The notes beneath the pieces are model-generated. The model had not been told where the DNA came from, did not search any database, and saw only the letters and a list, made by a program, of their open reading frames with translations. Below are positions 23,069-59,462 of a stretch of DNA of 64,000 bases, piece by piece; the stretch's first letter is position 1; each line of letters starts with the position of its first letter. Position numbers and translations under genes: made by a program. The stretch covers positions 1-64,000 of the forward strand of contig JAPDFW010000144.1 of assembly GCA_028826165.1 (NCBI GenBank), written 5' to 3'. Origin of the DNA: Anaeramoeba ignava BMAN (Eukaryota > Protista > Anaeramoebae).

Positions 23069-23878
23069 TTAATCATTTTGTTCAATTATCGTCTCATTCC
23101 TTTTTTTTGCCCAAGGATTTTTTTCCAAAAACTCTTCAATAGCTTGACGAAGACAAATATTTGGATGAAATTGGTCTTTATTAATAGGAATTCTTGTTAT
23201 TGGATCTTGATTACCACCTGAATCTATATAATTGAATATAGCATTTTTTTCATAAGAAACACCACTATTTCCAACAACAGGATCATTCATAATATCCAAC
23301 GAAATCGGACAACAAAAATAGGAAGGGATTTCTGGCCTTTTTGGTTGGATTTTCTCGAAAAAAATTTGGAGTTCTGACATTTTGTCTTGAATATCAAGAA
23401 CATTTTTTGAATTTTGATTTCTCAAACGAATCAATTCATCCAAATATTGAAAAAGATTATTTTTTGTTTTTTCCAAATAGTTTTTTTCCTGATTTTCATT
23501 CTCTTGGAAAAGTAAGAGTTCAACTTCATCGATTTTCCCTTTCAATTCTTGGATCCAAGTCGCTTTTTCCTTTTCTGAAAGACGAAGCGAAGTTTTAAGT
23601 GATTCCAATGCATTTTTATATTGTTTTTTTCCTGATAAAGCTAATCCTCGAAAATAGTGTGCTTTTATTGAAGAATGATTAAATTGCAAAACTGCTTCGC
23701 AATCTGATAAACTTTTATCATATTCTAATATTTTAATTTGTGAAAGTGCTCTATTAAGATATAAAACTTCTCTTAAATTTTGATCGGGATGTGAATTTAA
23801 TCCAAATGTATAAAAATTAATTGCTTGTTCGAATTGATTTGATCTAAAAAATTCATTTCCTTTTTCTTTAAATTCCAT
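23069..23878 (-). CDS. TPR + U-box E3 ubiquitin ligase (CHIP/STUB1-like)
   Basis: Three TPRs (KEKGNEFF..A..Y, YLNRA, IKAHYFRG) and a U-box (IPSYFCCPISLDIMNDPV..SGVSYE..DPITR..PN..LRQAIEEF). Confidence 0.9.
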   Translation of the reverse strand: MEFKEKGNEFFRSNQFEQAINFYTFGLNSHPDQNLREVLYLNRALSQIKILEYDKSLSDCEAVLQFNHSSIKAHYFRGLALSGKKQYKNALESLKTSLRLSEKEKATWIQELKGKIDEVELLLFQENENQEKNYLEKTKNNLFQYLDELIRLRNQNSKNVLDIQDKMSELQIFFEKIQPKRPEIPSYFCCPISLDIMNDPVVGNSGVSYEKNAIFNYIDSGGNQDPITRIPINKDQFHPNICLRQAIEEFLEKNPWAKKRNETIIEQND

Positions 23879-29867: not shown

Positions 29868-30905
29868 TTAGATCAAAAAAATCAAAAGAAAGAAAGAATA
29901 TTTAAACAATAAAAATAATTTAATTTTTTATTATTAATTATTTTAATTCAATTTAATCCACTTTTTTATTATTAATTATTTTAATAATTTAATTAAATTT
30001 AATCCACTTTTTTATTATTAATTAATTTAATTCAATAATTTAATTCAATTTAATCCACTTTTTATTATTAATTATTTAAAATTTTAATTTAAAATTTAGA
30101 TCAAAAAAATCAAAAGAAAGAAAAGAATATTTAAACAATAAAAATAATCTAATTTTTTATTATTAATTATTTTTAATTAAATTCAATCCACTTTTTTATT
30201 ATTAATTATTTCAATAAATTTAATCCACAATTTAATCCACTTTTTATTATTAATTATTTTATTTAAATTTAATTAAATTTAATTTTTAAAATTATATTTA
30301 AACAATAAAATTAATTTAATTTTTTATTATTAATTATTTTAATTTAATTAAATTTAATCTAATTTTTTATTATTAATTATTTTAATATTTTAATTAAATT
30401 TAATCCACTTTTTTTATTATTAATTATTTTAATTTAAAATTTTAGATCAAAAAAATCAAAAGAAAAAAAGAATATTTAAACAATAAAAATAATTTAATTT
30501 TTATTATTAATTATTTTAATTCAATTTAATCCACTTTTTATTATTAATTATTTTAATAATTTAATCCAATTTAATCCACTTTTTATTATTAATTTTTATT
30601 TTAAATTTTCAAAAATCAAAAGAAAAAAAATAAACAAAAAAAAAAGAATATTTAAACAATAAAAATAATCCTAATTTTTTATTATTAATTATTTTAATTA
30701 AATTTAATCCACTTTTTTATTATTAATTATTTTAATAATTTAATCAAAAATAAAAAGAAAAAGAATATTTAAACAATAAAAATAATCTAATTTTTATTAT
30801 TAATTATTTTAATTCAATAATTTAATCAAAAAAATCAAAAGAAAAAAAGAATATTTAAACAATAAAAATAATTTAATCCACTTTTTTATTATTAATTATT
30901 TTAAT
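29868..30905. repeat. Complex AT-rich tandem repeat between the divergent DDX6 and DPP genes
   Basis: Recurrent modules AATCCACTTTTTTATTATTAATTA and AAAGAATATTTAAACAATAAAAATAAT. Confidence 0.85.
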
Positions 30906-30948: not shown

Positions 30949-33900
30949 ATGACAAATCAATTAAAGGATAAAATTCAACAAATTTCATATCTTTTATCAC
31001 AATCAAACCATCAAAAAATTCCAAGAAATTTACATTTTTATGAAGATAAATTATTATTTATTGGAGAAGATTATAAAATTTCACGAACAACAAATCTATA
31101 TACAGCGGACATAAAAACAGGAGAATGGAAAGCAATATATGAAGGAAACCTAACAGAAAGCAAGAAAACACTTTCAAAAGAGGAAATTTTATTGCAAGAA
31201 AGACAAAGAAAAAGAAATTTTTCAGGATTATCAAATTATATTATAAATGAAAAAAATCAAATTCTACTTTTTCCACTTTCAGGAAATACAATTTATTATG
31301 ATTCACTTATTGAAACTTCCAAAAACTCTTTTACAAACAAGGATATAAACAAAAGTTTGATTGAAATCACCCCCAAAGATTCAATTTCTTCATCTCCAAG
31401 AATGTCACCTTCTTTTTCTTCTGATTCAAGATTTCTTTCTTTTGTTAGAGATAATGATCTTTTTATCACTCTAATAGATAATAAAAATCAAAATACAAAT
31501 TTATTTATGGAATTCCAGCTTACTCAAGGCTCGAAATCTGCTTATGCTGAGTTTGTTATGCAGGAAGAATTTGATAGGTTTGATGGATATTGGTGGTCTC
31601 CTTCTGTTTATTTGAATGTATTTTGTTACTTTTGGATTTTTATTCAAATCAAAATTAAAATTAAAATCAAAATTAAAAATCAAAATCAAAATTTAAATTA
31701 AAATTAAAAATCAAAATTAAAATTAAAATTAAAATTAAAATTAAAATTAAAATCAAAATTAAAAATCAAAATTAAAATCAAAATTAAAATTAAAATTAAA
31801 ATCAAAATAAAAATCAAAATTAAAATCAAAATTAAAATCAAAATCAAAATTAAAATTAAAATTAAAATCAAAATTAAAATCAAAATTAAAATTAAAATTA
31901 AAATTAAAATTAAAAATCAAAATCAAAATTAAAATCAAAATAAAAATTAAAATCAAAATTAAAAATCAAAATCAAAATTAAAATTAAAATTAAAATCAAA
32001 ATTAAAATTAAAATTAAAATTAAAATCAAAATTAAAATTAAAATCAAAATCAAAATCAAAATTAAAATTAAAATCAAAATTGAAATCAAAATCAAAATCA
32101 AAATCAAAATTAAAATCAAAATTAAAATTAAAATTAAAATAAAAATCAAAATTAAAATTAAAATTAAAATCAAAATTAAAATTAAAATCAAAATCAAAAT
32201 TAAAATCAAAATCAAAATCAAAATCAAAATCAAAATCAAAACTAAAATTAAAATCAAAAATTAAAATTAAAATCAAAATCAAAATTAAAATTAAAATAAA
32301 AATTAAAATTAAAATTAAAATTAAAATTAAAATCAAAATTAAAATCAAAATTAAAATTAAAATTAAAATCAAAATTAAAATTAAAATAAAAATCAAAATC
32401 AAAATTAAAATCAAAATCAAAAATAAAATCAAAAATAAAATAAAAATCAAAATTAAAAATTAAAATCAAAAATTTTAGGACTCAATAAGAACTTATAGAA
32501 TTTTATACCTCGAAGTTGATGAAAGTGAAATCACAAAATATCCAATTCTAAATCAAGCAAAAAACAGTTTTGAAGTGGATAATTTTCTTTTTCCATTTGT
32601 CGGAACTAAAAATGCAAAATGTGATTTGCGCCTCATAGAAATAAATGAAAACATTGAAACAGGGGAAATCAAGTGGGAAAAATACAAATTAAAAACTCCG
32701 ATATTTGAAGAATTTTCTTGGGCCGAATATATTGTGCGTTGTGGTTGGGTAACCGATGGCCAACATTATTGGGTTCAATTACTTGATAGATCGCAAGAGA
32801 AATTATCTTTAATACGGTTTGGATTGGACAGTTTTATTTCTGAAAAAAATGGAGATCAAGAAAGCACAAAAATCAAATACGATATTTTAATTGAGGAAAA
32901 AACGGAAATTTGGATCAATGTGACAGACATTTGTTATTTTTTTGAAAAAAATCCAAATCAATTTATCTGGGCAAGCGAAAAATCAGGTTTCAGACATCTT
33001 TATCTGAAAGTGATTGTGGAAGATGAAAAAAGAAATGTTTTAGAAGTGAAAACTTTTGATATTACAAAAGGTGAAAATTGGCAAGTTTGTGAACTTGTTT
33101 CTATTGATGAAATAAACCAACTTGTGTATTTTATGGGGACTAAGGACACTCCTCTTGAAAAGCATTTGTATGTCGCATCACTAAAACAAGGGAATGATCC
33201 CACACAAATTCACAGACTGACTGAATTTGGGTTTAATAATATTGAAGTTGCAATGAATTCCAAATGCACAATGTTCGTTTCCAAAAAATCAAGTATTCAA
33301 AAAGAAGCAACAATTACAATTTACGGAATAGAATTTCCTGAGGGAGAAAAATATCAACCACCGAATATCAAAACATTGGCAAATGTGGATACAGCGCCAT
33401 CTATAGTGTACAATAATATTTTCCCCATTTGCAAACCCGAAATTTTTAATTTTCAATCAAAAACAGGTGAAGATCTTTATGGTTGTTTTTATCGTCCAAA
33501 TGAAGATGATTTCCAACCGCCTTATAAGACTTTCTTGAATATTTATGGAGGTCCTCATGTTCAGCAAGTCAAAAACGACTATTCACTTACAAGCAATTTA
33601 CTCTATCAAACATTAGTCAGTATGGGATATGCTGTTGTTATTATTGATGGTCGTGGTTCTTGGAATCGTGGATTGCATTTTGAAAGTTATTTTAAGAAAA
33701 AAATGGGAACTTTTGAGCTTGAGGACCAAATTCAAGGTCTGAAAACTTTATCTGATTTTGGAATTGTTGATTTGTCAAGGATTGCTGTTTATGGTTGGAG
33801 TTATGGTGGATATATGGTAGCTATGGCTATGGCTAGATATTCTAATTTTTTCAAGTTGGGGATTTGTTGTGCTCCTGTTATTTCATGGAATTTTTATGAT

Positions 33901-34536: not shown

Positions 34537-34679
34537 AAGATTTAAAAAAGGGAAATTTTTTTGAATTTGGAATTTTTGAAGAATTTATAATTTTTTTTAT
34601 GAGAGAAACAAATTCCAAAAAAGAATTGATTCATTTCATTAAAAGATTTAAAAGCAATTTTCCATTTAATTTGTTTTAA

Positions 34680-36110
34680 TTTAGATTTATATTTATATTT
34701 ATAATTATATTTAGATTTATATTTAGATTTATATTTATATTTATATTTATATTTTAAATATTTGAATTGAATTTGATTTTAGATTTATATTTATATTTAG
34801 ATTTAGATTTAGATTTAGATTTAGATTTAGTTTTATTTAGATTTTAGATTTAGATTTAGATTATATTTAGTTTATATTTTAATTTAGATTTATATTTTAA
34901 ATATTTGAATTGAATTGAATTGAATTAAATTTGATTTATATTTAGATTTTAAATATTTGAATTGAATTTGATTTAGATTTAGATTTAGATTTATTTCAAT
35001 TTATATTTAGATTTAGATTTATATTTATTTTTAGATTTATTTTAATATTTAATTTGAATATTTAGATTTATATTTTATTTATATGGATTTATTTATATTT
35101 AAATTTAGATTTTAGAAAAGAAACATAGTTTTATATTTATTTAGATTTAGATTTAGATTTTGATTTAGATTTAGATTTAAATTTAGTTATATTTAGATTT
35201 AAATTTATAATTAAAATTTTTATTTTTAAATTTTAAAAGAACAAATTTAGATTTTTAGATTTGGACTTTTGATGAAAATGTTCATTTTTTAGATTTTATT
35301 TTTAATTGAATTTAGATTTGATTTGGAAATATTTATATTCTTCAATTATTTTAGATTTATATTATGATTTATATTTATGGAAAAATTTATATTTAGATTT
35401 GGAATTTATCATTTATGGAACATATTTTTGGATTTAATAGGAAATTTTTGAATTTAGATTTTAAAGAATTTATAATTTTTTTGAGAGAAACAAATTCAAA
35501 AAGATTTGATTCATTTATTTAGATTTTAAAAGATTTCCATTTTAATTTTTTTATTTAGATTTATATTTAGATTTTATTTTTATTTAAATATTTGATTGAA
35601 TTTAGATTTAGATTTAGATTTTAGATTTAGATTTATATTTAGATTTATATTTAGATTTATATTTAGATTTTATATTTTAGATTTAGATTTAGATTTTATT
35701 TATATTTATATTTAGATTTAGATTTAGATTTAGATTTATATTTATATTTATATTTAGATTTAGATTTAGATTTATATTTAGATTTAGATTTAGATTTAGA
35801 TTTAGATTTAAATATTTAAATTGAATTGAATTTGATTTATATTTAGATTTATATTTAGATTTATATTTAGATTTAGATTTATATTTTAAATATTTGAATT
35901 GAATTGAATTTGATTTAGATTTATATTTAGATTTATATTTAGATTTATATTTAGATTTATATTTAGATTTTAATTTAGATTTATATTTAGATTTATATTT
36001 AGATTTATATTTAGATTTAGATTTAGATTTAGATTTATATTTAGATTTATATTTAGATTTATATTTAGATTTAGATTTATATTTTAAATATTTGAATTGA
36101 ATTTGATTTA
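34680..36110. repeat. (TTTAGA/TTTATA)n microsatellite containing a garbled echo of the DPP 3' end
   Basis: Hexamer satellite with fragments of 34170-34680 interleaved at ~35080-35560. Confidence 0.85.
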
Positions 36111-38818: not shown

Positions 38819-39492
38819 TTAAACTCCTCCTAAAGCAGATGAAACAAGAACATACATTCCAAATCCAAAACATCCATAAAGAATAACAAGAACACATAAA
38901 CAAATTGAATCAGCTAAAGTAACACTATATAATTTCCCACATTGATCTTTCTAAATAAAATAAAATAAAATAAAACAAAATAAAAAGTGGAATAAGAATA
39001 AAAAAAAATTTTTTTCTTTTTCTTTTTCCTCATTTTTATTTACAATTCCATTAGAAGAAGACCAAACAAATCCAATAATTAACCAAACCAAAAGAAAAAG
39101 ATGAGTTAAGTGAATTGACCAAATAAAAACGCCAATTAAAGGATAATCTCTGGAAAAATAAGTTAAAATTGCAAAGACAAGATCAACAATCAAAAAAATA
39201 TTACAAACCAAAATCCAAGTCCATAATTTTTTATCACAATCCTTTAATATTTTTTCAATTAAATTTGTATTTAGATTGATTTTTTTTATTTTTGCTTTTT
39301 TTTTTTCTTTTACTAAATTTTTATCTTTTGAAGCAATAACTAAAGAAGGAATAACAACAGCAAAAGTTGTAACAAATTGAATTAAGAAAAGTATTATTAA
39401 AACTCTTTAAATTAATACAAAATTTCAAATTAAAATTAAAAATGTTTCTTTTTTTAAATTTAGTTTTGGTTTTACTTATTATCTCTTTTCAT
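38819..39492 (-). CDS. Diverged paralog of the 12.4-15 kb small multi-TM proteins, 4 exons
   Basis: IPSLVIASKDKNL|DCDKKLWTWILV..LVWLIIGFVW..|KDQCGKLYSVTLA. The last two intron positions match those of the triplicated gene. Confidence 0.75.
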
Positions 39493-39590
39493 AATAATTT
39501 TAAATGAAAGAAAGTAAAAAAGAAAAAATGATTTGAAACAAAACAAAAAAAAAATGGGAAATAAAACATTTTTTTTTCTATTTTTAAATT

Positions 39591-39989
39591 CTAATTGTTT
39601 TCTATTTCTTTAAGTGTTTCAATTTCTTCAAATTGTTTTTGAGATTTTGTTTGTAAATTATTTAGTTCAGAAAATAATTTTTCAGTTTGTTCTTTTTCTG
39701 TTTTTAATTGAAGAAATTTTAAATGAATTTCTTTTAATTTTTCAGATTTTTGTTCAATATTTTGATTTTGTTGAAGATTATTAAGTGAATTTTCAATATT
39801 TTCACTTTCTTTTTCTAAAAAAATAATTGTTTTTTCATAATCAGAAATTTTTTCTTCATAAATAGAAATTTGAGAAATATAATTATCAAGTTTTTGGTTT
39901 TGATTTTCTGTTTTTTGAAGTTCTTTAATAACATTATTAATTTTATAATCAATTTCCTTTTCTAAATTTTGAAGAGAAATATTTTCCAT
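39591..39989 (-). CDS. Small coiled-coil protein of unknown function
   Basis: 132-aa ORF rich in E/K/Q/L with heptad character. Confidence 0.6.
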   Translation of the reverse strand: MENISLQNLEKEIDYKINNVIKELQKTENQNQKLDNYISQISIYEEKISDYEKTIIFLEKESENIENSLNNLQQNQNIEQKSEKLKEIHLKFLQLKTEKEQTEKLFSELNNLQTKSQKQFEEIETLKEIENN

Positions 39990-40045
39990 TTTAAAAAAAA
40001 AAAATAAAAAAAAATAAAAAAATAAATTAATAAAAAAATTAAAAA

Positions 40046-40118
40046 TGACGTTGCCAAGAGTCGAACTTGGGTCTTGAACGTGTAAAGTTCACGTGCTCAA
40101 CCGTTACACTACAACATC
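40046..40118 (-). tRNA. tRNA-Val(TAC), intact and intronless
   Basis: GATGTTG-TA-GTGT..GCAC-G-TGAAC-TTTACAC-GTTCA-AGAC-CCAAG-TTCGACT-CTTGG-CAACGTC-A folds into a cloverleaf and is followed by a TTTTT Pol III terminator. Confidence 0.97.
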
Positions 40119-43100
40119 TTTTTAATTTAAATTTAAATTTAAATTTGTTATTTTAATTTTTTAAAAATAAATATATTTAAATTAATTATTAAAATTATTT
40201 TATTAAATTTATATTAATAATTTTAATAATATTATATTAATATTTATAAATAAATTTAAATAAAATAATATAAATATAAATAAATATATTATTAAATATA
40301 TATTTAATTTAATTTATTAATTTAATAAATTTTATTCCACTTTTTATTTATTTAATCATTTAAATATAAATATATAAATAAATAAATATAAATATAAAGT
40401 TCACGTGCTCAACCGTTACACTACAACATCTTTTTAATTTAAATTTAAATTTTAAATTTGTTATTTTAATTTTTAAAAATAAATATATTTAAATTAATTA
40501 TTAAAATTAATTTATTAAATTTATATCAATAATTTTAATAATATTATATTATTATTTATAAATAAATTTAATTAAAATAATATAAATATAAATAAATATA
40601 TTATTAAATATATATTTAATTTAATTTATTAATTTAATAAATTATATTCCACTTTTTATTTATTTAATCATTTAAATATAAATAAAAATATAAATAAATA
40701 AATATAAATAATTCAAATTTAAATTTTAAATTTGTTTTTAATTTTTAAAAATAAATATATTTAAATAAATTATTAAAATTATTTTATTAAATTTATATCA
40801 ATAATTTTAATAATAATATATTAATATTTATAAATAAATTTAAATAAAATAATATAGATATAAATAAATATATTATTAAATATATATTTAATTTAATTTA
40901 TTAATTTAATAAATTTTATTCACTTTTTATTTATTTAATCATTTTAAATAAATAAATAAATAAAATAAATAAATAAATAAATAAATAAATATAAATAAAT
41001 AAATAAATAAATAAATAAATATAAATATAAAGTTCACGTGCTCAACCGTTACACTACAACATCTTTTTTAATTTAAATTTAAATTTTAAATTTGTTATTT
41101 TAATTTTTAAAAATAAATATATTTAAATAAAATATTAAAATTATTTTATTAAATTTATATTAATAATTTTAATAATATTATATTAATATTTATAAATAAA
41201 TTTAATTAAATAATATAAATATAAATAAATATATTATTAAATATATATTTAATTTAATTTATTAATTTAATAAATTATATTCCACTTTTTATTTATTTAA
41301 TCATTTAAATATAAATATAAATATAAATAAATATAAATATAAAGTTCACGTGCTCAACCGTTACACTACAACATCTTTTTAATTTAAATTTAAATTTAAA
41401 TTTGTTATTTTAATTTTTTAAAAATGAATATATTTAAATAAAATATTAAAATTATTTTATTAAATTTATATTAATAATTTTAATAATATTATATTAATAT
41501 TTATAAATAAATTTAAATAAAATATATAAATATAAATAAATATATTATTAAATATATATTTAATTTAATTTATTAATTTAATAAATTATATTCCACTTTT
41601 TATTTATTTAATCATTTAAATATAAATATAAATAAATATAAATAAATATATAAATAAATATAAATATAAAGTTCACGTGCTCAACCGTTACACTACAACA
41701 TCTTTTTAATTTAAATTTAAATTTTAAATTTGTTATTTTAATTTTTTAAAAATAAATATATTTAAATTAAATTATTAAAATTATTTTAATAAATTTATAT
41801 TAATAATTTTAATAATATTATATTAATATTTATAAATAAATTTAAATAAATATATAAATATAAATAAATATATTATTAAATATATATTTAATTTATTTTA
41901 TTAATTTGATAAATTATATTCCACTTTTTATTTATTTAATCATTTAAATAAATAAATAAATATAAATAAATAAATAAATATAAAGTTCACGTGCTCAACC
42001 GTTACACTACAACATCTTTTTAATTTAAATTTTAAATTTGTTATTTTAATTTTTAAAAATAAATATATTTAAATTAATTATTAAAATTATTTTAATAAAT
42101 TTTATATTAATAATTTTAATAATATTATATTAATATTTATAAATATATTTAAATAAATAATATAAAATATATATAAATAAATATATTATTAAATATATAT
42201 TTAATTTAATTTATTAATTTAATAAATTTTATTCCACTTTTTATTTATTTAATCATTTAAATATAAATAAATATAAATAAATATAAATAAATAAATAAAT
42301 ATAAAGTTCACGTGCTCAACCGTTACACTACAACATCTTTTTAATTTAAATTTTAAATTTAAAATTTGTTATTTTAATTTTTTAAAAATAAATATATTTA
42401 AATAAAATATTAAAATTATTTTAATAAATTTATATTAATAATATTAATAATAATATATTAATATTTATAAATAAATTTAATTAAAATAATATAAATAAAA
42501 ATAAATATATTATTAAATATATATTTAATTTAATTTATTAATTTAATAAATTTTATTCCACTTTTTATTTATTTAATCATTTAAATATAAATATAAATAT
42601 AAATAAATAAATAAATATAAATATAAAGTTCACGTGCTCAACCGTTACACTACAACATCTTTTTAATTTAAATTTAAATTTTAAATTTGTTATTTTAAAT
42701 TTTTAAAAATAAATATATTTAAATAAAATATTAAAATTAATTTAATAAATTTATATTAATAATTTTAATAACATTATATTAATATTTATAAATAAATTTA
42801 ATTAAAAATATATAAATATAAATAAATTTATTATTAAATATATATTTAATTTAATTTATTAATTTAATAAATTATATTCCACTTTTTATTTATTTAATCA
42901 TTTAAATATAAATAAATATAAATAAATAAATATAAATAAATGTAAAGTTCACGTGCTCAACCGTTACACTACAACATCTTTTTAATTTAAATTTAAATTT
43001 TAAATTTGTTATTTTAATTTTTTAAAAATAAATATATTTAAATTAATTATTAAAATTATTTTAATAAATTTATATTAATAATATTAATAATAATATATTA

Positions 43101-46100
43101 TTATTTATAAATAAATTTAAATAAATAATTTAAATAAAAATAAATATATTATTAAATATATATTTAATTTATTTTATTAATTTAATAAATTTTATTCCAC
43201 TTTTTATTTATTTAATCATTTAAATATAAATAAATATAAATAAATAAATATAAATAAATGTAAAGTTCACGTGCTCAACCGTTACACTACAACATCTTTT
43301 TAATTTAAATTTGTTATTTAAATTTGTTATTTTAATTTTTAAAAATAAATATATTTAAATAAAATATTAAAATTAATTTTAATAAATTTATATTAATAAT
43401 TTTAATAATATTATATTATTATTTATAAATAAATTTAATTAAATAATATAAATAAAAATAAATATATTATTAAATATATATTTAATTTAATTTATTAATT
43501 TAATAAATTTTATTCCACTTTTTATTTATTTAATCATTTAAATATAAATAAATATAAATAAATAAATAAATATAAATATAAAGTTCACGTGCTCAACCGT
43601 TACACTACAACATCTTTTTAATTTAAATTTAAATTTTAAATTTGTTATTTTAATTTTTTAAAAATAAATATATTTAAATAAAATATTAAAATTATTTTAA
43701 TAAATTTATATTAATAATATTAATAATATTATATTAATATTTATAAATAAATTTAAATAAATAATATAAATAGAAATAAATATATTATTAAATATATATT
43801 TAATTTAATTTATTAATTTAATAAATTATATTCCACTTTTTATTTATTTAATCATTTAAATATAAATATAATTAAATATAAATATAAATAAATATAAATA
43901 AATATAAAGTTCACGTGCTCAACCGTTACACTACAACATCTTTTTATTTTAAATTTAAATTTTAAATTTGTTATTTTAATTTTTTAAAAATAAATATATT
44001 TAAATTAAATATTAAAATTATTTTAATAAATTTATATTAATAATTTTAATAATATTATATTAATATTTATAAATAAATTTAATTAAATAATTTAAATATA
44101 AATAAATATATTATTAAATATATATTTAATTTATTTTATTAATTTAATAAATTTTATTCCACTTTTTATTTATTTAATCATTTAAATATAAATAAATATA
44201 AATAAATATAAATAAATAAATGTAAAGTTCACGTGCTCAACCGTTACACTACAACATCTTTTTAATTTAAATTTAAATTTTAAATTTGTTATTTTAATTT
44301 TTTAAAAATAAATATATTTAAATAAATTATTAAAATTATTTTAATAAATTTATATTAATAATATTAATAATATTATATTAATATTTATAAATAAATTTAA
44401 ATTAAATAATATAAATAAAAATAAATATATTATTAAATATATATTTAATTTAATTTATTAATTTAATAAATTATATTCCACTTTTTATTTATTTAATCAT
44501 TTAAATATAAATAAATATAAATAAATAAATATAAATAAATAAATAAATATAAATATAAAGTTCACGTGCTCAACCGTTACACTACAACATCTTTTTAATT
44601 TAAATTTAAATTTAAATTTGTTATTTTAATTTTTTAAAAATAAATATATTTAAATAAAATATTAAAATTAATTTAATAAATTTATATTAATAATTTTAAT
44701 AATATTATATTATTATTTATAAATAAATTTAAATTAAATAATATAAATAAAAATAAATATATTATTAAATATATATTTAATTTAATTTATTAATTTAATA
44801 AATTATATTCCACTTTTTATTTATTTAATCATTTAAATATAAATAAATATAAATAAATAATATAAATAAATAAATAAATATAAATATAAAGTTCACGTGC
44901 TCAACCGTTACACTACAACATCTTTTTAATTTAAATTTAAATTTGTTATTTTAATTTTTTAAAAATAAATATATTTAAATAAAATTATTAAAATTAATTT
45001 AATAAATTTATATTAATAATTTTAATAATATTATATTAATATTTATAAATAAAAATTTAATTAAATAATATAAATATAAATAAATATATTATTAAATATA
45101 TATTTAATTTAATTTATTAATTTAATAAATTTTATTCCACTTTTTATTTATTTAATCATTTAAATATATATAAATATATATAAATATAAATATAAATAAA
45201 TAAATAAATATAAAGTTCACGTGCTCAACCGTTACACTACAACATCTTTTTAATTTAAATTTAAATTTTAAATTTGTTATTTTAATTTTTTAAAAATAAA
45301 TATATTTAAATAAAATATTAAAATTAATTTTAATAAATTTATATTAATAATTTTAATAATATTATATTATTATTTATAAATAAATTTAAATAAATAATAT
45401 ATAAATAAAAATAAATATATTATTAAATATATATTTAATTTAATTTATTAATTTAATAAATTATATTCCACTTTTTATTTATTTAATCATTTAAATATAA
45501 ATAAATATAAATATATAAATATAAATATAAAGTTCACGTGCTCAACCGTTACACTACAACATCTTTTTAATTTAAATTTAAATTTAAATTTAAATTTGTT
45601 ATTTTAATTTTTAAAAATAAATATATTTAAATAAAATATTAAAATTATTTTAATAAATTTATATTAATAATTTTAATAATATTATATTATTATTTATAAA
45701 TAAATTTAATTAAATAATATAAAATAAAAATAAATATATTATTAAATATATATTTAATTTAATTTAATTTATTAATTTAATAAATTTTATTCCACTTTTT
45801 TTATTTATTTAATCATTTAAATATAAATAAATATAAATAAATAAATAAATATAAATATAAATATAAAGTTCACGTGCTCAACCGTTACACTACAACATCT
45901 TTTTAATTTAAATTTAAATTTAAATTTGTTATTTTAATTTTTTAAAAATAAATATATTTAAATAAAATATTAAAATTATTTTAATAAATTTATATTAATA
46001 ATATTAATAATATTATATTAATATTTATAAATAAATTTAATTAAATAATATAAATAAAAATAAATATATTATTAAATATATATTTAATTTAATTTATTAA

Positions 46101-46200
46101 TTTGATAAATTTTATTCCACTTTTTTTTATTTAATCATTTAAATTTAAATATAAAAATAAATATAAATAAATATAAATAATTCAAATCAAATTTAAATTT
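40119..46200 (-). repeat. ~320 bp tandem array, about 19 units, 17 of which carry the 5' half of tRNA-Val
   Basis: The tRNA position-1 G of each half lies at 40430, 41063, 41375, 41702, 42016, 42337, 42659, 42978, 43296, 43614, 43940, 44258, 44591, 44922, 45246, 45563 and 45899. The unit near 40710 lacks the tRNA piece. Confidence 0.97.
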
Positions 46201-46591
46201 GTTTTTTGTGTTTAATTATGATCAAAAAAAAAAAATAATAAAAAGAAATCTTTGATCAAACTGCCATCTAAAAGAAAAAATTTTTCCAACACAACCCAAA
46301 ATTTAATTAATTTTTAATTAAAAATTAAATAGCAAATGATTAATAAGAAATAATAAAAAAAAATAGAATGATTAATAACAAATTTTTTTTTAAAAAGAAA
46401 AGAGAAAAGAAGTTTCAAAAAAAAAAAACAAAAAATAAATCCAAATTTGATCAATTCAAAGATAAAAAAAAATTTACAAATAAAAAAATCCTTTCATCAT
46501 TTTTTTTAAATTCATTTTTTTCATCTTTTTCTTTTTTCTTTTTTTTTTTACTTTTTATTTGAGAAATTAAAAAAAAAATACTTAATTTAAC

Positions 46592-49500
46592 ATGAAAAAA
46601 ACAAACAAAAAAAATAATAATAACAATAATAACAATAATAATAATTATTATAACAATAACAATAACATAAAAATTCAACAAAATTCACAACTCTCACCAT
46701 CACAAATTATATCTCCAATTCCAAAGAACCAAATACAACATACAGAACTTTCAGAAAACACAATATTCAGTTATTTTTCAGGTTCCAAAATATATACAGT
46801 AAACCATCATTTGCACCCAATTGCGCAAATTTCTCTCAAGGACTCTTTCCCTATTAGACTTTCTTGGTCTCATTCCAAACATCTTGTAATTTTTTTTTTT
46901 ATATTTTCTTGATTTTTTATTTTTTATATATTTTTTATTTTTTATATATTTTTTTCTTTTTTATCTTAAAAAATTTCTTCTTCTTCCTGATAATTTTTCT
47001 CAAAAAAACCAAAAAACAAAAAAATGCAAATATACCAATATTTAATTATGTATTCTAGCTTGCTGTGGCAAGAACTTCTGACATCCAAATTTATCATTTG
47101 TTTTACCAAAATGGAGACTATCGTTTTTCGCTTTTTGCCACTTTGAAATACAAAGCAACCCAAATGTTCTGGTCTCCTCTTGACCGCTACTTTTCCATTT
47201 ATTCGGAGAATCTAGTCATTCTTAGAATCAACGAAGAAAACCAATTCGAAAAATATTTTCAAATTCCCATTTTTTCCCCAATTATTGACTCACAATTTTC
47301 TCCAGATGAAAGACTATTTTTTACAGTTTGCCAAAATGATCCATTTGTTAAAATTTGGTTCAATCAATCCAAATGTAACCGATTAATTTTTTTACAATTT
47401 AAAATGTGATAATTTTTTAACTCGACAAAATTTGAAAAAAAAATAATTTTTTTTTTAAAAATTAATTTAGCAAAAACAAAACTCAACTTTATTTATCTGA
47501 GACATCCAGCAAAAGTACTAAATGCTCAATGGAGGACAGGATACCCATTAATTTCTACAGTTCCAAGAAAGCAAAACTTACTTACATCATGTGCAGATGG
47601 ATTATTAAGAATTTGGACAGAAGCAAATTTTTATGAACCGTTTATGTTTCTTCATAGTTGTATTTTAGAAAGCGTTCCGAACACTTTAGTTTGTTGGCTG
47701 AACGCGAATATTTCTTCGCCAGCCAAAAAGGAGGATATTAAATTTTTCCCTATTCCTGAAAAGAATCCAAATTTTCAAATCAACGAAAATGAAAATTTTT
47801 CAAAAGAAAAAAATCCAATCCAAACAAATCCAAAATTAAGAATTGAATATCAAAAAAACAATTTCATTTCGAGTTTTCATCAACATGAATATTATTCGCC
47901 AGAAAATCACGAGGTTGAATATTTTATTGAAACTCCTTCAGAAAGAACTCGTGATTTAATTCTTGGAATTGATCCTGAAGGAACAATTATAATTTGGCTT
48001 ATTAAAGGATTATCAGAACAATCTAGAAAAATACCCAAAATCAAAGAATTTGCGAAATTCTATTATGCAATTAAACTGATCAATCCTCAATCTCAAATAA
48101 CCCATTTTTATGTTTCTCAAAAAAGCTTCAAATCATGGCCGTCTTTTCTTGCTGGCGACCATAAAACATTACTACCAAGTCACTTGAAAATTTTCACTCA
48201 AATCACTCATAATAATGTTTCATCTGATAATGATCCTTTAACTGAATTTACTTTTTGGGAATTGGAATTTGGCAAAGAAATCAAAAATAGATATAAAAGA
48301 TCCAATAATCCATCAAGAAACCATAAAAAGACAAATCCTATTTCTTTTCATAAGTTTCATCGGTTTCAAATATCATATTCACAAGATACAATTCATATTA
48401 AAGATCATATTCAAGAAAAAGAAAATCAAAATCAAAATATAAAAGAAAATCAAAATATAAAAGAAAATCAAAAAGAAAATATAAAAGAAAATCAAAATAT
48501 AAAAGAAAATCAAAAAGAAAATATAAAAGAAAATCAAAATCAAAATCAAAATATAAAAGAAAATCAAAATATAAAAGAAAATACTGACACAATTCATCAT
48601 ACTCTCCAAATTCTCAATTCTCCAATTACCTTACGCTCCAAAATAATCGGACATCCAAGTGAAATCATCAGAATAATTTCTCATAGTAATCTTCCAATAA
48701 TTGGATCTCTTGATATTAAAGGAAATTGTTTTATATGGGTTTATTCTGAATCAAGTTTCCAAACACATTCAAAATATCTTCGTATTCTAGGGTGTTTGAA
48801 CATGATTCCAAATGACAAAACTGTTTCTCCAAATAGTAAATTCAAGAATATTTTTTCTCTCCAGAAATTCCTCTTCTTTTTGCTCAAGATGCTAATGGAT
48901 TGCATTGCTTTTATGTTGACATTCATCTTGAAAACACAGCACATTCTCCTTTTAAATATTTGGGTGAGGTTTTAAATGCTCATGAATATAGTACAAAAAA
49001 TGATATTCTTAATGTTCAAATATTCATATCAACCCAAAAAAACCTTTTTTTGATTCTTTGCTTTGCTTCTTTTGATAGAAAGAATTTAGTTTTAAAGAAA
49101 ATCCCATTTTATCAAAAAAAAAACAAATTCAAAATTACTATTGATCCCAATTCAAACAATAAAATTGAAATTGGGATTGAATCCAATCAAGAAATTGCAA
49201 GTATTGCATCCACAGAGGATATTTGTCTGAGTTGTATTCCAGATTCATTGTTTAATCTCCTTGTAGCTGATTGCTCTGGAATTATCCATTTTTTCTCAAT
49301 AACATTAACAAATGAAGATGTAAATGAAAATTCATTCGGTTTTAATTGCAAAAAAATCCTCAAATTCCAAACTTTCCAAAAAAAAATCTCGAATATCAAA
49401 ACTCTAAATATTGATAAATTCGCAACTTTCAGTGCAAGTGATTCTTGCATTTGTATTTGGGCACTCAAGTCTTCATTTTCTGATTTCTATTTAGAACAAA

Positions 49501-52500
49501 AAATCAAAATCACAAAACCAATTCAACAAATGGATGCACAATTTGAATGGTTTGATCTCCACAATAACACAAATATCCTCACTGTTTGTGACGGTGCAAA
49601 AATTGTAATTTATGGCCCAAAACCTATTTTGCATCGCACAAACTTACAGAAATTAACTCCACAAAATGAAAAGGAAGAAAACCAAGAAACATCTCAACAA
49701 AAAAATAACTATTGGGAACCATTAGCAGAATTTGCTAATAAGGATTCTCAAAAAACCCCATTTCGCACATTTCAATGGAGCACAACAGGATTGCTTTTGG
49801 CAAGTTGCAAAGACACAATATATGTTGTTAACTCAATAAAGAAAACCAAAGAACAAATCAATGATGATTATTCTGATTCTGGAAAAGAAACTATTCTCGA
49901 ATTGATTCACCATCAAACAAAACTCTTGCCTTATTATCATTCTCAAAACCTCATCTCAGATCTTAAAGCAGGCAATTTCCAGCGACTTGATGCCTTGATT
50001 AAACATTTTTTTCAGTTTCTTCAACAGAAAATTGAAAATAACCAAAATATGATTCCTGATATTGAAGAAATGTTCAATTTCCATAAAAACAGCAACGAAA
50101 CAAAACAGAATTACGAAGACATATTCGAATTAAAAATCGAAAATGAAAATCAAAATGAAAATGAAAATCAAAATGAAAATCAAAATCAACCAGACAAAAA
50201 AGAAATTCTTGAGAAAATCAAATACTGGATTACTCAAGTCGATCTTTTCCCATCTCACGAATATCCAAAAGAGGAAGTTATCAAATTGATTTCTTTGATT
50301 GAACTTTTCTTCATGAAAGACAACCTCAAAGGAGCCTTGGATGATTTAGCCTTCCATTTCTTTTTGCAATTCAAATACAATCAAATTCTCAAAGAGAATG
50401 AACAACAATTCCAAATGAAAGAAGTTGAAGAACAAGATGATCAACAGGAAACCATTGGAAACATTGAATCGCAACAAGATTCAAGCATTGAGCACTACTA
50501 TTTCTCATCATCTGATATTGCTTGGGCTTTTCTTTCAGAATCCCAAGAGCAGCTAATAGAGAGTTGCTTGACATCTCCCGAGTTATTTCAATGGAAAAAT
50601 GTCAGAACACTTGGATGCGGTTATTGGATCAAATCACCCCAAAATCTCCAATCTCTTGCTGAGAAAATAGCCATTTCTGAATTCAAAAAAACTGGAGATC
50701 CTGAAGATTGCGCTTTATTTTATTTGGCAATGAGAAAGGTTTCTATTCTTTCAGGAATTTATAAAACAACCAAAGATTTCAAGCTTTCCAAATTCTTGCA
50801 AAACAACTTCCAAGAGGAAAGATGGAAAAGTGCAACCTTGAAGAATATTTACAAATTATTAGGATTTCGCAAATTTAAAATTGCTGCTAGTTTCTTTTTG
50901 TTAATAGGAAGAGTAGAAGATTCTATTAGTATTATTATCAAGAATATCCAAGATATTCAACTTGCTGTTTTTGTTGCAAGATTGTATTTAAGCGACCAAG
51001 ATGAAGCTTTCCAAAAATTAGTTTTTGAAAAATTTCTTCCTTTAGCAACAAATCAACAAGATGTATTTATTCAATTTATATTCAATTTCTGGGTCAAGAA
51101 ATATCAAGAATCTATTAATTGTTTACTTGGGATTTCTATCCAAAATACGCACAATTTGAAAGATATTGAGAAGGAAAATACAGATTTCAGATCAATCAAT
51201 CAACCTGGTGATTCTTCAATTATTCAATTCATCCAAATAATCAAACAAAATGAATTTATGAGAAATATTCAAATTCCAAAAGAGTTTTTTATAAATTATT
51301 ATAAGAATTTATTCCAATTACATGCAAAGCAAGGTTCTTCATTTCTTGCATTTGAGAGTTTGAAGCGTTTGGATGAATTATTAAATGGAGATTCTAAAAA
51401 AGATGATGAAAATACAGATTTTGAAAAAGATGATGAAAATACAGATTCTAAAAAAGATGATGAAAATACAGATGAAATTTTTGAAAATGATAATTCAAAT
51501 TTTGAAAATGATAATTCAAATTTTACAAATGATAATTCAAATTTTGAAAATGATAATTCAAATTTTACAAATGAAAATTCAGAAGATGAACTTGATGGTT
51601 TTGATTATGGTTATGGAGTTGGTTTTGGTGCTGTAAATAGATCTAATTTTATGTATGGAATTGATCTTGATAAAATTGAAGAAAATCAAATTGAAAATCA
51701 AATTGAAAATCAAAATAAAAATCAAAATAAAAATGAAAATGAAAATCAAAATGAAAATCAAATTGAAAATGAAAATGAAAATGAAAATGAAAATGAAATT
51801 CAAATTCAAAATCAAAATAGAAATCAAATTGAAAATCAAATTAAAAAAGGATTTCTTACAAAAGATTTATCAAGAGATGTTATAAAACACTTCCAAATTG
51901 AATTCTCCTTAGAATTGTTATCAGAATTTCTCCCACAAACAACACTAGAATTTTCATCCTTAGTTTTACCATTGCAATCAAACCCAAACAAAACACAAAA
52001 AAACTCTCATTTATTTGATGATAAGCCTTTCCAACAATTTTATCGGAATTTACACTTTATATCAAGTTATTTTAAAATACCAAAGAAAATATTAAAAAAT
52101 AGATTGATAAAATTTTGCCATTTAAGAAATGTTGATTATCCAGGTTATCTTTTCTCAAAGAAAAAAGAGAGAAAAGTTTATTATATCGAGATTCTTTCAG
52201 ATCAGATTTCGAACATAATTGAAGATAATGATATTGACCTTATCCACAAATTACCCAAAAAGAAAATTTTTGCATTTGCTCAATCGCTTTTGATTTTATA
52301 CAGATTGAGAAAATCAGCACAAAAAACAAAAGATCCAAGCCTGGAAAAAACTATTGCAAAAGCAACTTTTACATTGTATTTTGGGATATTCATTCTGGGG
52401 TTTATGGAAAGAAAATATGATATTATAAGAGATTTCTTGGCAAAAGAACCAAACGAAAAACATATGTTTCGGGAAGTGATTAAAAAATTGGAAGCGTTTA

Positions 52501-54680
52501 TCCAAGAATATATTCGCAACCATTTCCATCCGGATAATTTTGCTGGAATGGAAAGAGCCAAAACAGAAGATGATCTTTATGATTTGGAATTGAAGCAGAG
52601 ATTGGGGTTGATCGATAAACAGGAAATCAATAATGAGCAATTTGAATTGGAAAATATCAATACAAATATAAAATTGGAACAAAAAAAGCAACAAAAACAG
52701 GATGAGATGAGAGGAAAACAGAGCAAAGTTTTTTGTTCCTCATTAACCAATATCAGCAATGTTGCATTTCACTTATCCAAATTAACTGTTCTTCATTTTT
52801 TCAAGACACAATTAAAAATACAATTTGTGAAATGTTTTGGGACTGAAATGATTGAAACATCCCAAATGGAAAACCCGATTGAATCCGAGCAACAAATTTT
52901 AATATCAATGGAACATCTTAATTCGGAGGTGCGGAACCATCTTGTTCAATTTTATCAGCAAAATATAGACACAATCCATAGTTTTGCGTTGTTTATTGAA
53001 GAAATTCTCCACTTTAATTTCCAAGACGAAAAACACAATCGTTTGTGGAATTTTATGAGAACAAAATATAAGCATATCATTTTGGAAGTGATTCAAAATA
53101 GCATTTGCAGATCAAGATTCCATCATTTTGGAAGAGAAAGTTATAAGAGCCATCTCACAAAAAAACACTCATCAGAACCACCAATAGAGCAAACAGGACC
53201 ACGAGTTTTGGTCAACTCTATGGGACTATTCCGCTCATTTTGCATCAACAATCTCGACAAGAATCAATTCGCAATTGCAAGTACAAAAGGACTTCTTGAT
53301 ATTTCGATTGGAGACTCAGAAAATGAAAGATTTTTCCAACTTTATCACGAATATTTGGAACATGAATCCCTAACAAATCCTTCATCTTTCCATTTTTCTC
53401 AATGCGACTCTTCTCGAATCCCTAATTTGCATTCCCAATTAGATCTCAGGCCAAAACATCAATCTCAATATCAACACAAAAATAAAGAACAACAGAAACA
53501 AAACGATTTGGTTTCACCTACAAAAAAGAAAATTAAGAAAAAATTCCGCAACAAAAAGAACCAACCCAAAATTGCCCATAATTTGGAGAATTTTGAGAAT
53601 TTGGAACAAAAAACCGTTTTGGACGCACATTTTTTCAATGAAAAATTAAGTTGTTTGGATCGACCAATGCGTTACAAACTTTTGATTGATCTACCTAACT
53701 TGAAAATTCCCGAAAAACTAATTTCTGGACCTGTTTATAAATTTACAAAAAGTAGATTTTTAGTGGATGATCGAAGCCAATATTTGACGCAAAAGAAGCG
53801 CAAGATATACTCGTTGGTTTCAAGAGCAAAGCCGTGGAACTCTGCCAATTTCACGCTTGAGTCACACCATTCGAGTTGGGTTGAATCTCATCCAAAATCA
53901 CCCTTTTATATTTCATCAGGATTAAATGGAAGATTATTTTTTTTCGAATTCCAGAAAAAAATGCCACTTTATGAAATACAAAAACAGACGAACAAAAAAA
54001 TTCTCAAGGTGAATTTCACGCCTGATGGAAGACAATTTGGGGTTTCTGATGTTTCTGGGTTTGTGCGTTTGTGGAATTGCGACCACAAACAAAACGAACC
54101 GTTTCAACCTTTTTACAGTCTTGAATGTCATCTAAAAAGAGCGAATGATTTTTTGTTCATCAATTCAGGAAGTGTGATTGCAACTGTTGGCAAAACAGAT
54201 TCAAACACAGAAAACATCTCTTTATGGGATACACTTATGCCACCTATGAATAACCGAATTGCAAAATTTGACGTTTTAAATGATGGAAGTGCTTCATCAC
54301 TTGCGTTTTCCAAAAAATACAATCTTCTTATTTGCGGAGGAAAAAAAGGAAGTCTTCATGTTTTTGATCTTCGGAAATCACAGTTGCTTTTTTCTTCCAA
54401 ACGCAATCATAAAACAACTATCAAAACAATTGCGATTAATCATGATGAATCAGTTGTTTTTACTGGCGCAACTGATGGGTCAATAAACGCTTATGATTTG
54501 CCTTCTTTTAAACTTTTGGAGCAATTTAAAAGTGAGCATTCAAAAAGACTTCGTTTTAGAGATAAAGTTTCAACAAAAACAGTTGCTGCTTATGGTGTTA
54601 CTAGGATTATATCTTCTGGTGATGAAATTATTTCTTCTGGTGCTGATGGCAAAATTATTGCAAGACATTTCCAAAATTGA
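46592..54680 (+). CDS. DMXL: DmX-like/Rabconnectin-3alpha/Rav1 WD40 protein, 3 exons, one probable indel near 48850
   Basis: N-terminal WD40s (YLRHPAKV..WR, LLTSCADGLLRIW), a Rav1p_C region (LPYYH, DIAWAFLSESQEQL, LGCGYWI, DPEDCALFYLAMRK, NNFQEERWKSATLKN, AASFFLL, DIQLAVFVARL) and C-terminal WD40s (ISLWDTLMPP, SSGADG). Confidence 0.92.
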
Positions 54681-54709: not shown

Positions 54710-56495
54710 TTTTTTCTTTTTCAAAATTTAAAATGAATTTTATCAATTTAAATTTAATCCAAATCCATTTAAATCAAATCAAATCAAAGTCAATTTAAAA
54801 TGAATTTTATCAATTTAAATCTAATCAAAATCAAAGTCAATTTAAATCTAATCCAAATTAATTTTCTTTTTTTTTGATTAAAATTTAAAATGAATTTTAT
54901 CAATTTAAATCTAATCCAAATCCAAATCAATTTAAATCAAATCAAATCAAAGTCAATTTAAAATGAATTTTATCAATTTAAATTTAATCCAAATCAATTT
55001 AAATCAAATCTAAAATTTTTTTTTTGATTAAAATTTGAAATGAATTTTATCAATTTAATCCAAATCAAAGTCAATTTAAATCCAAATCCAAATTAATTTT
55101 TTTTTCTTTTTAAAATTTAAAATGAATTTTATCAATTTAAATTTAATCCAAATCCAAATCAATTTAAATCAAATCTAAATTAATTTTCTTTTTTGATTAA
55201 AATTTAAAATGAATTTTATCAATTTAAATCTAATCTAAATCCAAATCAATTTAAATCAAATCCAAATTAATTTTCTTTTTTTTTTCAAAATTTAAAATGA
55301 ATTTTATCAATTTAAATTTAATCCAAATCAATTTAAATCAAATCCAAATTAATTTTCTTTTTTGATTAAAATTTAAAATGAATTTTATCAATTTAAATTT
55401 AATCCAAATCTAAATCAATTTAAATCTAATCCAAATCAAAGTCAATTTAAATCTAATCCAAATTAATTTTCTTTTTTGATTAAAATTTAAAATGAATTTT
55501 ATCAATTTAAATTTAATCCAAATCCAAATCAATTTAAATCAAATTTTAAATCAAATCTAAATTAATTTTTTTTTGATTAAAATTTAAAATGAATTTTATC
55601 AATTTAAATTTAATCCAAATCTAAATCAATTTAAATCAAATCTAAATTAATTTTCTTTTTTGATTAAAATTTAAAATGAATTTTATCAATTTAAATCTAA
55701 TCTAAATCCAAATCAATTTAAATCAAATCAAAGTCAATTTAAATCAAATCCAAATTAATTTTCTTTTTTTTTTCAAAATTTAAAATGAATTTTATCAATT
55801 TAAATTTAATCCAAATCAATTTAAATCAAATCAAATCCAAATTAATTTTCTTTTTTGATTAAAATTTAAAATGAATTTTATCAATTTAAATCTAATCCAA
55901 ATCAAAATCAATTTAAATCAAATCTAAATTAATTTTCTTTTTTGATTAAAATTTAAAATGAATTTTATCAATTTAAATCAAATCCAAATCAAATCAATTT
56001 AAATCAAATCTAAATTAATTTTTTTTTTTGATTAAAATTTAAAATGAATTTTATCAATTTAATCCAAATCTAAATCCAAATCAATTTAAATCAAATCAAT
56101 TTTATCAATTTAAATCTAATCCAAATCAATTTAAATCAAATCTAAATTAATTTTTGATTAAAATTTAAAATGAATTTTATCAATTTAAATTTAATCCAAA
56201 TCTAAATCAATTTAAATCAAATCTAAATTAATTTTCTTTTTTGATTAAAATTTAAAATGAATTTTATCAATTTAAATCAAATCCAAATCAAAGTCAATTC
56301 AAATCAAATCTAAATTAATTTTCTTTTTTGATTAAAATTTAAAATGAATTTTATCAATTTAAATCTAATCCAAATCAAAGTCAATTTAAATCCAAATCAA
56401 AGTCAATTTAAATCAAATCTAAATTAATTTTTTTTTGATCATTTTTTTTTGATCATTTTTTTCTTTTCAAAATTTAAAATGAATTTTATCAATTT
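54710..56495 (+). repeat. ~85-110 bp tandem array, about 20 units, each containing the start-codon region of the downstream CEP104-like gene
   Basis: AAAATTTAAAATGAATTTTATCAATTT recurs throughout, and the last copy is the real ATG at 56479. Confidence 0.9.
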
Positions 56496-58639: not shown

Positions 58640-59462
58640 AAATTTCAAATCTAAATCAAATTTTAAATCAATTTTAAATCAAATTTAAATCAAATCTTAA
58701 ATCAAATTTTAAATCAAATTTTAAATCAAATTTTAAATCAAATTTTAAATCAATTTTAAATCAATTTTAAATCAAATTTTTAAATCAAATTTTAAATCAA
58801 ATTTTAAATCAAATTTTAATTAAATCAATTTTAAATTAAATTTAAATCAAATTTTAAATCAAATTTTAAATCAAATTTTAAAATCAAATCTTAAATCAAA
58901 TTTAAAATCAAATCTTAAATCAAATTTTAAATCAATTTTAAATCAAATTTTAAATCAAATTTTAAAATCAAATTTTAAATCAATTTTTAAATCAAATTTT
59001 AAATCAAATTTTAAATCAAATTTTAAATTAATTTTTAAATCAAATTTTAAAATCAAATTTTAAATCAAATCTTAAATCAATTTTAAATCAAATTTTAAAA
59101 TCAATTTTTAAATCAAATTTTAAATCAAATTTTAAATCAAATTTTTAAATCAAATTTAAATCAAATTTTAAATCAAATTTTAAATCAAATTTTAAATCAA
59201 ATTTTAAATCAAATTTTAAATCTTAAATCAATTTTAAATAAATTTTAAATCAAATTTCAAACAAATTTTAAATCAAATTTTTAAATCAAATTTAAATCAA
59301 TTTTAAATCAAATTTTTAAATCAAATTTAAATCAATTTTAAATCAAATTTTAAAATCAAATTTTAAATCAATTTTTAAAATCAAATTCAAATAAATTTTG
59401 TTGAATCTTTATTGATTCTGATTAAATTCTGATTAAATTCTGATTAAATTCTGATTAAATCT
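58640..59462. repeat. 12-bp minisatellite (TTTTAAATCAAA)n followed by about 5 copies of CTGATTAAATT
   Basis: Seen directly; it lies between two convergent genes. Confidence 0.9.

Follow-up and report, generated by a model that had tools for sequence, protein, structure and literature searches.

Beside a tRNA-Val(UAC) gene of the protist Anaeramoeba ignava BMAN lies a 6-kb tandem array whose units carry truncated copies of that gene; the stretch of DNA analysed, which we call the window, comprises the 64,000 nucleotides from positions 1 to 64,000 of contig JAPDFW010000144.1 (GenBank assembly GCA_028826165.1). A preliminary description of the window had asked whether the array encodes 5' tRNA halves or trans-splicing partners, acts as an RNA polymerase III (Pol III) or chromatin array, or is a neutral satellite. 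We conclude that it is probably a young satellite made on the spot, by microhomology-mediated tandem duplication and subsequent unequal exchange, and that the tRNA pieces within it would be passengers. Four observations lead to this view: the anatomy of the array, the absence of 3' halves elsewhere in the genome, the recurrence of comparable arrays with other end points at other tRNA genes, and a peak of tandem repeats beside tRNA genes. Of the proposals made earlier, it is the neutral satellite that this evidence favours.

Structure of the tRNA-Val array

Tandem Repeats Finder (TRF) reports the locus as one array with a period of 318 bp, 19.0 copies, 89% matches and a score of 9485. The layout, unit count and copy number given here are those of the assembly, and as far as the assembly goes the array is real. 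The 36-mer GATGTTGTAGTGTAACGGTTGAGCACGTGAACTTTA, which is nt 1-36 of tRNA-Val, occurs 18 times without a mismatch, always on the minus strand, where shuffled sequences give an expectation of zero. One occurrence is the gene itself and the remaining 17 are partial copies, in agreement with the 17 tRNA-Val 5' pieces in minus-strand units of about 320 bp that had been described. The features of the locus are as follows.

40046-40118, minus: intact tRNA-Val(UAC) gene, the sole complete copy (ARAGORN; Rfam RF00005, 62.3 bits)
40083-46177, minus: whole tandem array, 19 units of 312-336 bp, each composed of upstream flank and nt 1 to 36-38 of the gene (TRF, unit table, alignment)
40143-40154, minus: upstream box AAAATAACAAAT, about 25-36 nt before the tRNA start, found in 18 units, its C invariant
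40333-40345, minus: AAAAAGTGGAATA box of the proximal unit, one per unit
40700-40720, minus: junction of the tRNA-less unit, AAATTTGAATTA joined to TTTATATTT, the same junction sequence as at the distal edge
46169-46188, minus: distal array edge, GATTTGAATTA joined to TTTATATTT; before the first unit comes a degenerate unit end that has no tRNA piece
40395-40430, minus: partial copy 1 (nt 1-36), T-type, exact match
41028-41063, minus: partial copy 2, T-type, exact match
41340-41375, minus: partial copy 3, T-type, exact match
41667-41702, minus: partial copy 4, T-type, exact match
41981-42016, minus: partial copy 5, T-type, exact match
42302-42337, minus: partial copy 6, T-type, exact match
42624-42659, minus: partial copy 7, T-type, exact match
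42943-42978, minus: partial copy 8, C-type, exact match, gene match continuing through A37
43261-43296, minus: partial copy 9, C-type, exact match
43579-43614, minus: partial copy 10, T-type, exact match
43905-43940, minus: partial copy 11, T-type, exact match
44223-44258, minus: partial copy 12, C-type, exact match
44556-44591, minus: partial copy 13, T-type, exact match
44887-44922, minus: partial copy 14, T-type, exact match
45211-45246, minus: partial copy 15, T-type, exact match
45528-45563, minus: partial copy 16, T-type, exact match
45864-45899, minus: partial copy 17, T-type, most distal, exact match

Read along the minus strand, a unit consists of about 275 nt of AT-only sequence, laid out like the upstream flank of the gene, and then the 36-mer; each partial copy is followed by (T/C)A and an AT-only spacer of (TATTTA)n-like sequence. 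As expected of a satellite that arose by local tandem duplication, the units run head to tail and are built from adjoining sequence, the proximal unit passes directly into the gene itself, and at the distal edge there is the degenerate end of a unit. Of the 19 units, one has no tRNA piece. The last base of the 36-mer is the second (middle) one of the anticodon, and at nt 37 three of the 17 partial copies have C, as in the gene, and 14 have T. The statement that the pieces end at A37 thus stands for the three C-type copies, in which the match to the gene extends that far, and falls for the other 14, in which the shared sequence stops earlier. The AAAAAGTGGAATA box is present in 18 exact copies from 40333 to 46113, one unit apart, with a further copy bearing a 1-nt deletion at 40917-40928, and AAAATAACAAAT is a variant of the AAATAAGAAAAA box that precedes most tRNA genes of this genome.

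Arrays at other tRNA genes end at other positions

For comparison we took ±4 kb around 26 other tRNA loci, which were best Rfam hits picked irrespective of repeats. The search for similar arrays that the preliminary description had proposed was rewarded, since seven of these loci contain extra partial copies of their own tRNA:

Trp: nt 1-21 copied, 11 copies, period about 320
Gln-CUG: nt 1-15 to 1-21 copied, 7 copies, period about 320
Gln-UUG: nt 1-17 to 1-20 copied, 4 copies
Thr-UGU: nt 1-18 copied, 3 copies
Gly-GCC: nt 1-32 copied, 1 copy
Ala-UGC (locus L022): last 21 nt and downstream flank copied, 2 copies
Ala-UGC (locus L032): last 18 nt and downstream flank copied, 1 copy

The two Ala-UGC loci are possibly not independent, because they have flanks in common. 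Every end point lies within sequence coding for the D, anticodon or T loop and is joined directly to AT-only spacer. The loop-coding patches (TA, TTT, TTTA) are the only A/T-rich parts of a tRNA gene, and end points in them are the outcome expected from microhomology-mediated joining. Because the end points differ between loci, the 37/38 end of the Val array is one outcome among several and, to judge from these sequences, looks coincidental; the seven other loci speak against position 37/38 as a designed end, since there the copied sequence ends at nt 15-21 or at nt 32, or starts at the T loop. Changes within the pieces of the more variable Gln-CUG and Trp arrays appear to parallel the C to T change at nt 37 of the Val copies: in Gln-CUG four of the seven pieces are altered, with indels, and one retains G21 where two others have A, and in Trp one of the 11 pieces has an inserted A.

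We also noted repeats that include complete tRNA genes. At tRNA-Asn, Ile, Leu-CAA and Leu-UAA (L034, L038, L039 and L045) two identical gene copies lie 1.3-4.8 kb apart with near-identical flanks, and the repeat unit includes the whole gene. On contig C104, nine or more full-length tRNA matches scoring 50-77 bits are clustered at positions 288264-292571, most of them separated by about 250-500 bp, which suggests that the genome has tandem arrays of whole tRNA genes as well. A B-box-like string, GGTTCAATTCC, is arrayed at a period of 200-300 bp on several contigs (C6:36216-38722; C11:9562-12213 and 87993-89317; C17:74237-80023; C22:61191-72852; C24:53608-54491; C1:171436-172228), and these arrays could be whole tRNA genes or 3' fragments.

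Tandem repeats peak beside tRNA genes

TRF was run on the 26 loci, arrays with a period of at least 60 bp were counted, and coverage was averaged over the 22 single-gene loci. Array coverage is 0.45-0.59 at -750 to 0 relative to the tRNA and 0.35-0.42 at +250 to +1500, and it is down to 0.03-0.09 at ±3.5-4 kb; for the window outside the Val array we estimate about 7%. The arrays reach the genes themselves, and most of the tRNA genes sampled have such repeats immediately next to them: upstream array edges fall at -106 to +38 of the tRNA start, and most downstream arrays start no more than about 70 bp past the tRNA end. tRNA genes are thus focal points of satellite birth in this genome, caught in progress at several genes.

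On a possible cause of this association, Tawari et al. 2008 (PMC2652664), citing work in yeast, describe Pol III complexes as replication fork barriers and tRNA genes as recombination hot spots, and use the fork-barrier idea to explain the repeats beside Entamoeba tRNA genes. By analogy, arrays are most likely drawn to the tRNA genes of A. ignava by Pol III complexes that would stall replication forks. An alternative cause would be an element in the flank that is worth amplifying.

Proposed origin of the array

Both the cause of this attraction and the duplication mechanism are inferred from sequence. We propose that the array began with an illegitimate tandem duplication of a segment of about 310 bp, which would have comprised the upstream flank of the gene, with its promoter-like upstream box, start site and AAAAAGTGGAATAAA box, and tRNA-Val nt 1-38. 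On the proximal side the break would have fallen in the A/T-rich anticodon-loop sequence (after ..ACTTTACA), on the distal side in a TTTAT-rich stretch, with short TA/TTTA microhomology present at both. Such a duplication would have been harmless, with nothing to select against it, because a tandem duplication that ends inside a gene leaves one intact copy. Unequal sister-chromatid exchange or replication slippage could then have expanded the array to 19 units; nt 37 would later have changed from C to T, and the T variant spread to 14 copies. The 17 partial copies would be passengers without an RNA product of their own.

Variation among the units

The alignment of the 19 units left out the microsatellite stretch of variable length with which each unit begins. 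As the preliminary description had stated, the first 36 nt are identical and the spacers vary: none of the 36 core columns is variable across copies, whereas 32 of the 245 stable spacer columns are (13%; nucleotide diversity 0.031), to which are added the length changes in the (TATTTA)n-like stretch. At equal rates the probability of finding no change in 36 columns is about 0.006, and it is about 0.05 if just the core's 21 A/T sites are counted. In 27 of the 32 variable spacer columns the change is a swap of A and T within low-complexity sequence, and the five G/C spacer columns are all as invariant as the core. The comparison of core and spacer rates that had been called for therefore gives a divided answer, and the conservation of the core may be taken as real but weak evidence of constraint. 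Because A/T swaps dominate and the G/C spacer columns are invariant as well, the variation would seem to come mostly from slippage-like processes that spare mixed sequence, and constraint and unequal mutability are not separable here.

The unit without a tRNA piece is the most divergent, with 9-17 differences from the others as against 2-15 among the other units. Since it also has the junction sequence of the distal edge, an older duplication free of tRNA sequence seems to have preceded the one that produced the present array.

A conserved box in tRNA-flank satellites

The string AAAAGTGGAATAAA is common to the Val, Trp, Gln-UUG, Thr and Gly units. More generally, the 15-nt box AAAAAGTGGAATAAA is invariant in 17 of 18 arrays (one consensus per locus), and the unit sequence that surrounds it is unrelated from one array to the next. 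At 22 of 27 loci its GTGGAAT portion is no further than about 260 bp from the tRNA start; it may be on either strand and to either side of the gene, and the spacing of successive copies peaks at 80-89, 150-169 and 310-329 bp. Genome-wide there are at least 2878 exact 14-mers of the box versus one of a reversed control; the 27 loci, which make up 0.66% of the genome, contain 241 copies.

The box is not confined to tRNA flanks, since on contig C1 many of its clusters are far from B-box-like hits. Six of the 17 clusters there lie within about 1 kb of such a hit, all six upstream and on the same strand, and 11 have none within about 1 kb, according to a pattern search that was incomplete and missed the array at L020. 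The largest GTGGAAT clusters of this contig, C1:1087303-1093437 and C1:1178246-1198761, have no B-box-like hit within several kb. Some arrays that abut tRNA genes are without the box, namely that of Gln-CUG and those at L025, L030, L031 and L041.

Most tRNA genes examined (L020-L045) have AAATAAGAAAAA about 30-45 nt before the start, then (AAATT)n-like sequence and a run of A just before the start; AAATAAGAAAAA is probably an upstream Pol III promoter element. A literature search with the 15-nt box string matched only primers and unrelated sequences, and no paper describing the box was found. Among metagenome contigs scanned with a 22-nt version of the box, nine had single hits, probably chance matches, and none an array.

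Three further readings were considered and set aside. A simple model of a polar fork barrier does not agree with its orientation, the downstream copies being on the same strand at about eight loci and on the opposite strand at about seven. B boxes require C56 in their consensus; read as a degenerate B box, the box has G in place of this essential residue. It is unlikely that a mobile element inserted time and again at tRNA genes, the units being homogeneous within an array and, except for the box, unrelated between arrays. There are two remaining readings: the box may belong to tRNA flanks as a regular element and have been amplified as a passenger, or the reiterated box may itself be the point of the arrays.

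Alternative explanations

The locus might encode 5' tRNA-half small RNAs, or 5' trans-splicing partners in the manner of archaeal split tRNA genes, as the preliminary description had envisaged, and three features are in keeping with this: in the three C-type copies the match to the gene stops at A37, which is the canonical position of introns and splits; the core is identical across all copies; and each unit retains an upstream box and a start site. The searches speak against both versions. Across the 42.8-Mb assembly, with up to three mismatches allowed, the 37-nt 3' part of the gene has a single match, inside the intact gene, so that the genome has no orphan 3' halves and therefore no splicing partners for the pieces; the 36-mer likewise has no match outside the array. 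The partial copies retain the A-box region (nt 8-19), but the units contain no B box, the G and C residues outside the tRNA piece being limited to one G in ATGATT, GTGG and one C in AATAACAAAT (AACAAA). The first run of four T (T4) follows each partial copy only at +99 to +250, so that a Pol III product, if there is one, would measure 100-250 nt and not be a tRNA half; in the real gene T4 is at +74, and a T5 run at 40041-40045 immediately follows its 3' end. In addition, an intact gene adjoins the array, an anticodon base is altered in 14 of the 17 copies, and equivalent arrays elsewhere end at nt 15-21 or nt 32, or contain 3' ends. We regard encoded halves, whether as small RNAs or as splicing partners, as very unlikely. 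An artefact of assembly in this low-complexity AT-rich region, affecting the array or its copy number, we consider unlikely: the region is indeed highly repetitive and contains about 6-7% G+C, but the combination of substitutions and length variants is particular to each unit, one unit is without a tRNA piece, and arrays of the same design with unrelated spacers stand at several tRNA genes on other contigs.

It has also been proposed that this is a Pol III or chromatin array, and in a general form the Val array and the other tRNA-flank satellites would be a functional Pol III-linked chromatin element: the reiterated AAAAAGTGGAATAAA, spaced at about one nucleosome repeat, would bind a factor and, alone or together with the partial promoters (upstream box and A box), phase nucleosomes, insulate the gene, or enhance tRNA transcription or buffer it, and the tRNA piece would be part of the working unit. 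The identity of the box in 17 of 18 independent arrays with unrelated flanks, its position within about 260 bp of the tRNA start at 22 of 27 loci, the three spacing peaks, the excess of exact 14-mers over the reversed control, the upstream box of 18 units with its invariant C and the unchanged core of all 17 copies are what such an element would lead one to expect. The proposal gains something from the fact that each unit keeps the upstream box, start site, A box and 15-nt box. Strong binding of TFIIIC to type 2 promoters needs a B box, however, and is not expected of units that have none. Furthermore, the 15-nt box is missing from several arrays that abut tRNA genes (Gln-CUG, and arrays at L025, L030, L031 and L041), is found on both strands and both sides of the gene, has no B-box-like hit within about 1 kb in 11 of 17 clusters on C1 and may be a regular flank element amplified as a passenger, and the tRNA piece varies from 15 to 38 nt between arrays and is missing from most. 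We consider a functional chromatin element possible, though of low probability. Rather doubtful, too, is a more specific form, built on the same sequence features, in which the satellites would be a working Pol III-linked chromatin system, with a factor bound to AAAAAGTGGAATAAA at 80/160/320 bp, with co-amplified upstream box, start site and A box recruiting TFIIIB or Pol III, and with units serving as decoy or booster promoters or yielding 100-250-nt transcripts that start with a 5' tRNA half. Several points nevertheless weigh against our preferred reading, in which the array is a local satellite with passenger tRNA pieces. Because AAAAAGTGGAATAAA is unchanged between arrays that are otherwise unrelated, its invariance suggests selection on part of the unit; with the core unchanged in 17 copies while 13% of spacer columns vary, constraint is possible; the units keep an upstream box, a start site and an A box, from which TFIIIC-independent initiation would be possible; and fork stalling at these tRNA genes is inferred from other organisms only.

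Surroundings of the array

The tRNA-Val(UAC) gene is the single tRNA that ARAGORN calls in the whole window, and positions 39000-47500 contain no further Rfam match. The G+C content is about 20% across the window and 6-7% within 40001-46000. The end of the tRNA gene is 57 bp from the ATG of a 132-aa open reading frame (ORF) on the same strand (39591-39989, minus), and the array occupies the space up to oppositely oriented genes that begin at about 46500, one of which, at 48900-54680, encodes a RAVE/Rav1-like protein. Pfam domains in the neighbouring ORFs are a Rav1 C-terminal domain, WD40 repeats and bZIP, and a protein family search with a neighbouring ORF returned Rav1 families only. With a neighbouring 443-aa ORF as query, no independent contig on record was found to encode a match.

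The window alone contains more than ten tandem arrays, and the genome is generally prone to making satellites. Among its long microsatellites are (TTATAT) with about 82 copies, (ATTAAA) with about 137 and (TTAAA) with about 215, and also (AAAATC)n, and several unrelated arrays with periods of 87-490 bp have no GTGGAAT box. The stretches concerned, microsatellites and arrays together, are:

17317-17798, 31642-32471, 34664-36084, 58652-59399, 60091-61123 and 62109-63169
also 22042-23072, 29954-30748 and 54955-58105

Comparison with known systems

In the split tRNA genes of Nanoarchaeum and other archaea the 5' piece ends after position 37, as in the Val array. Such genes have a separate gene for the 3' half, no intact counterpart and flanks that can pair, whereas here there are no 3' half genes, the intact tRNA-Val(UAC) lies at 40046-40118, a (TATTTA)n-like spacer in place of a complementary leader or trailer follows each half, and an anticodon base is mutated in 14 of the 17 pieces. 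Stress-induced 5' tRNA halves (tiRNAs) are cut from mature tRNA by anticodon-loop nucleases and are not encoded as halves; the pieces equal a 5' half in sequence, but nothing in the array would indicate an RNA product. A type 2 Pol III unit has an A box, a B box and a nearby oligo-T terminator, and the Val units have the A box alone, with T4 at a distance. The extra TFIIIC (ETC) sites of yeasts, which are occupied by TFIIIC only, are B boxes, and tRNA genes can act as chromatin boundaries; the Val units resemble ETC sites as partial Pol III promoter elements in non-coding DNA, but what they hold is an A box and an upstream box, with no B-box-like sequence. In plants and animals, tRNA-derived satellites have monomers that contain tRNA-gene sequence and form old, dispersed families, whereas here we see birth at the parent gene, independently at several genes.

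The tRNA arrays of Entamoeba (PMC2652664) are closer, in that both are AT-rich protist genomes with tRNA genes tightly tied to tandem repeats and the same cause has been proposed, Pol III complexes as fork barriers and recombination hot spots. They differ in that Entamoeba units contain complete tRNA genes and almost every tRNA gene there is in an array; here a single gene stands beside units that repeat no more than nt 1-36 or 1-38 of it. The short tandem repeats of Entamoeba are 7-12 bp long, whereas the units found here are of 80-480 bp and consist of flank with 15-38 nt, or the last 18-21 nt, of the gene. Control-region repeats of animal mitochondria that include part of a neighbouring tRNA gene are likewise head-to-tail repeats of non-coding flank and truncated tRNA gene, and are proposed to arise at replication pauses with misalignment of the nascent strand (for example in the pause-melting misalignment model, PMC3599147); the Val array differs in being nuclear, in its much longer units, in the many loci involved and in the harmonics of about 160 bp. 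By analogy, the Val array would appear to work like the mitochondrial partial-tRNA repeats and the repeat-prone tRNA loci of Entamoeba and to be a member of neither group. A search of the literature on partial tRNA copies in satellites returned mostly mitochondrial or unrelated papers, plus the Entamoeba work.

A locus that encoded tRNA halves or split-tRNA partners would be remarkable if true, and the tests speak against it. The more interesting result is the tie between tRNA genes, satellites and the AAAAAGTGGAATAAA box. The arrays offer natural material for studying the birth of satellites and the old question whether replication is destabilised by Pol III genes to a degree that shapes genome architecture, and an invariant box of 15 nt, reiterated at nucleosome-scale spacing next to most tRNA genes, provides a concrete experimental handle.

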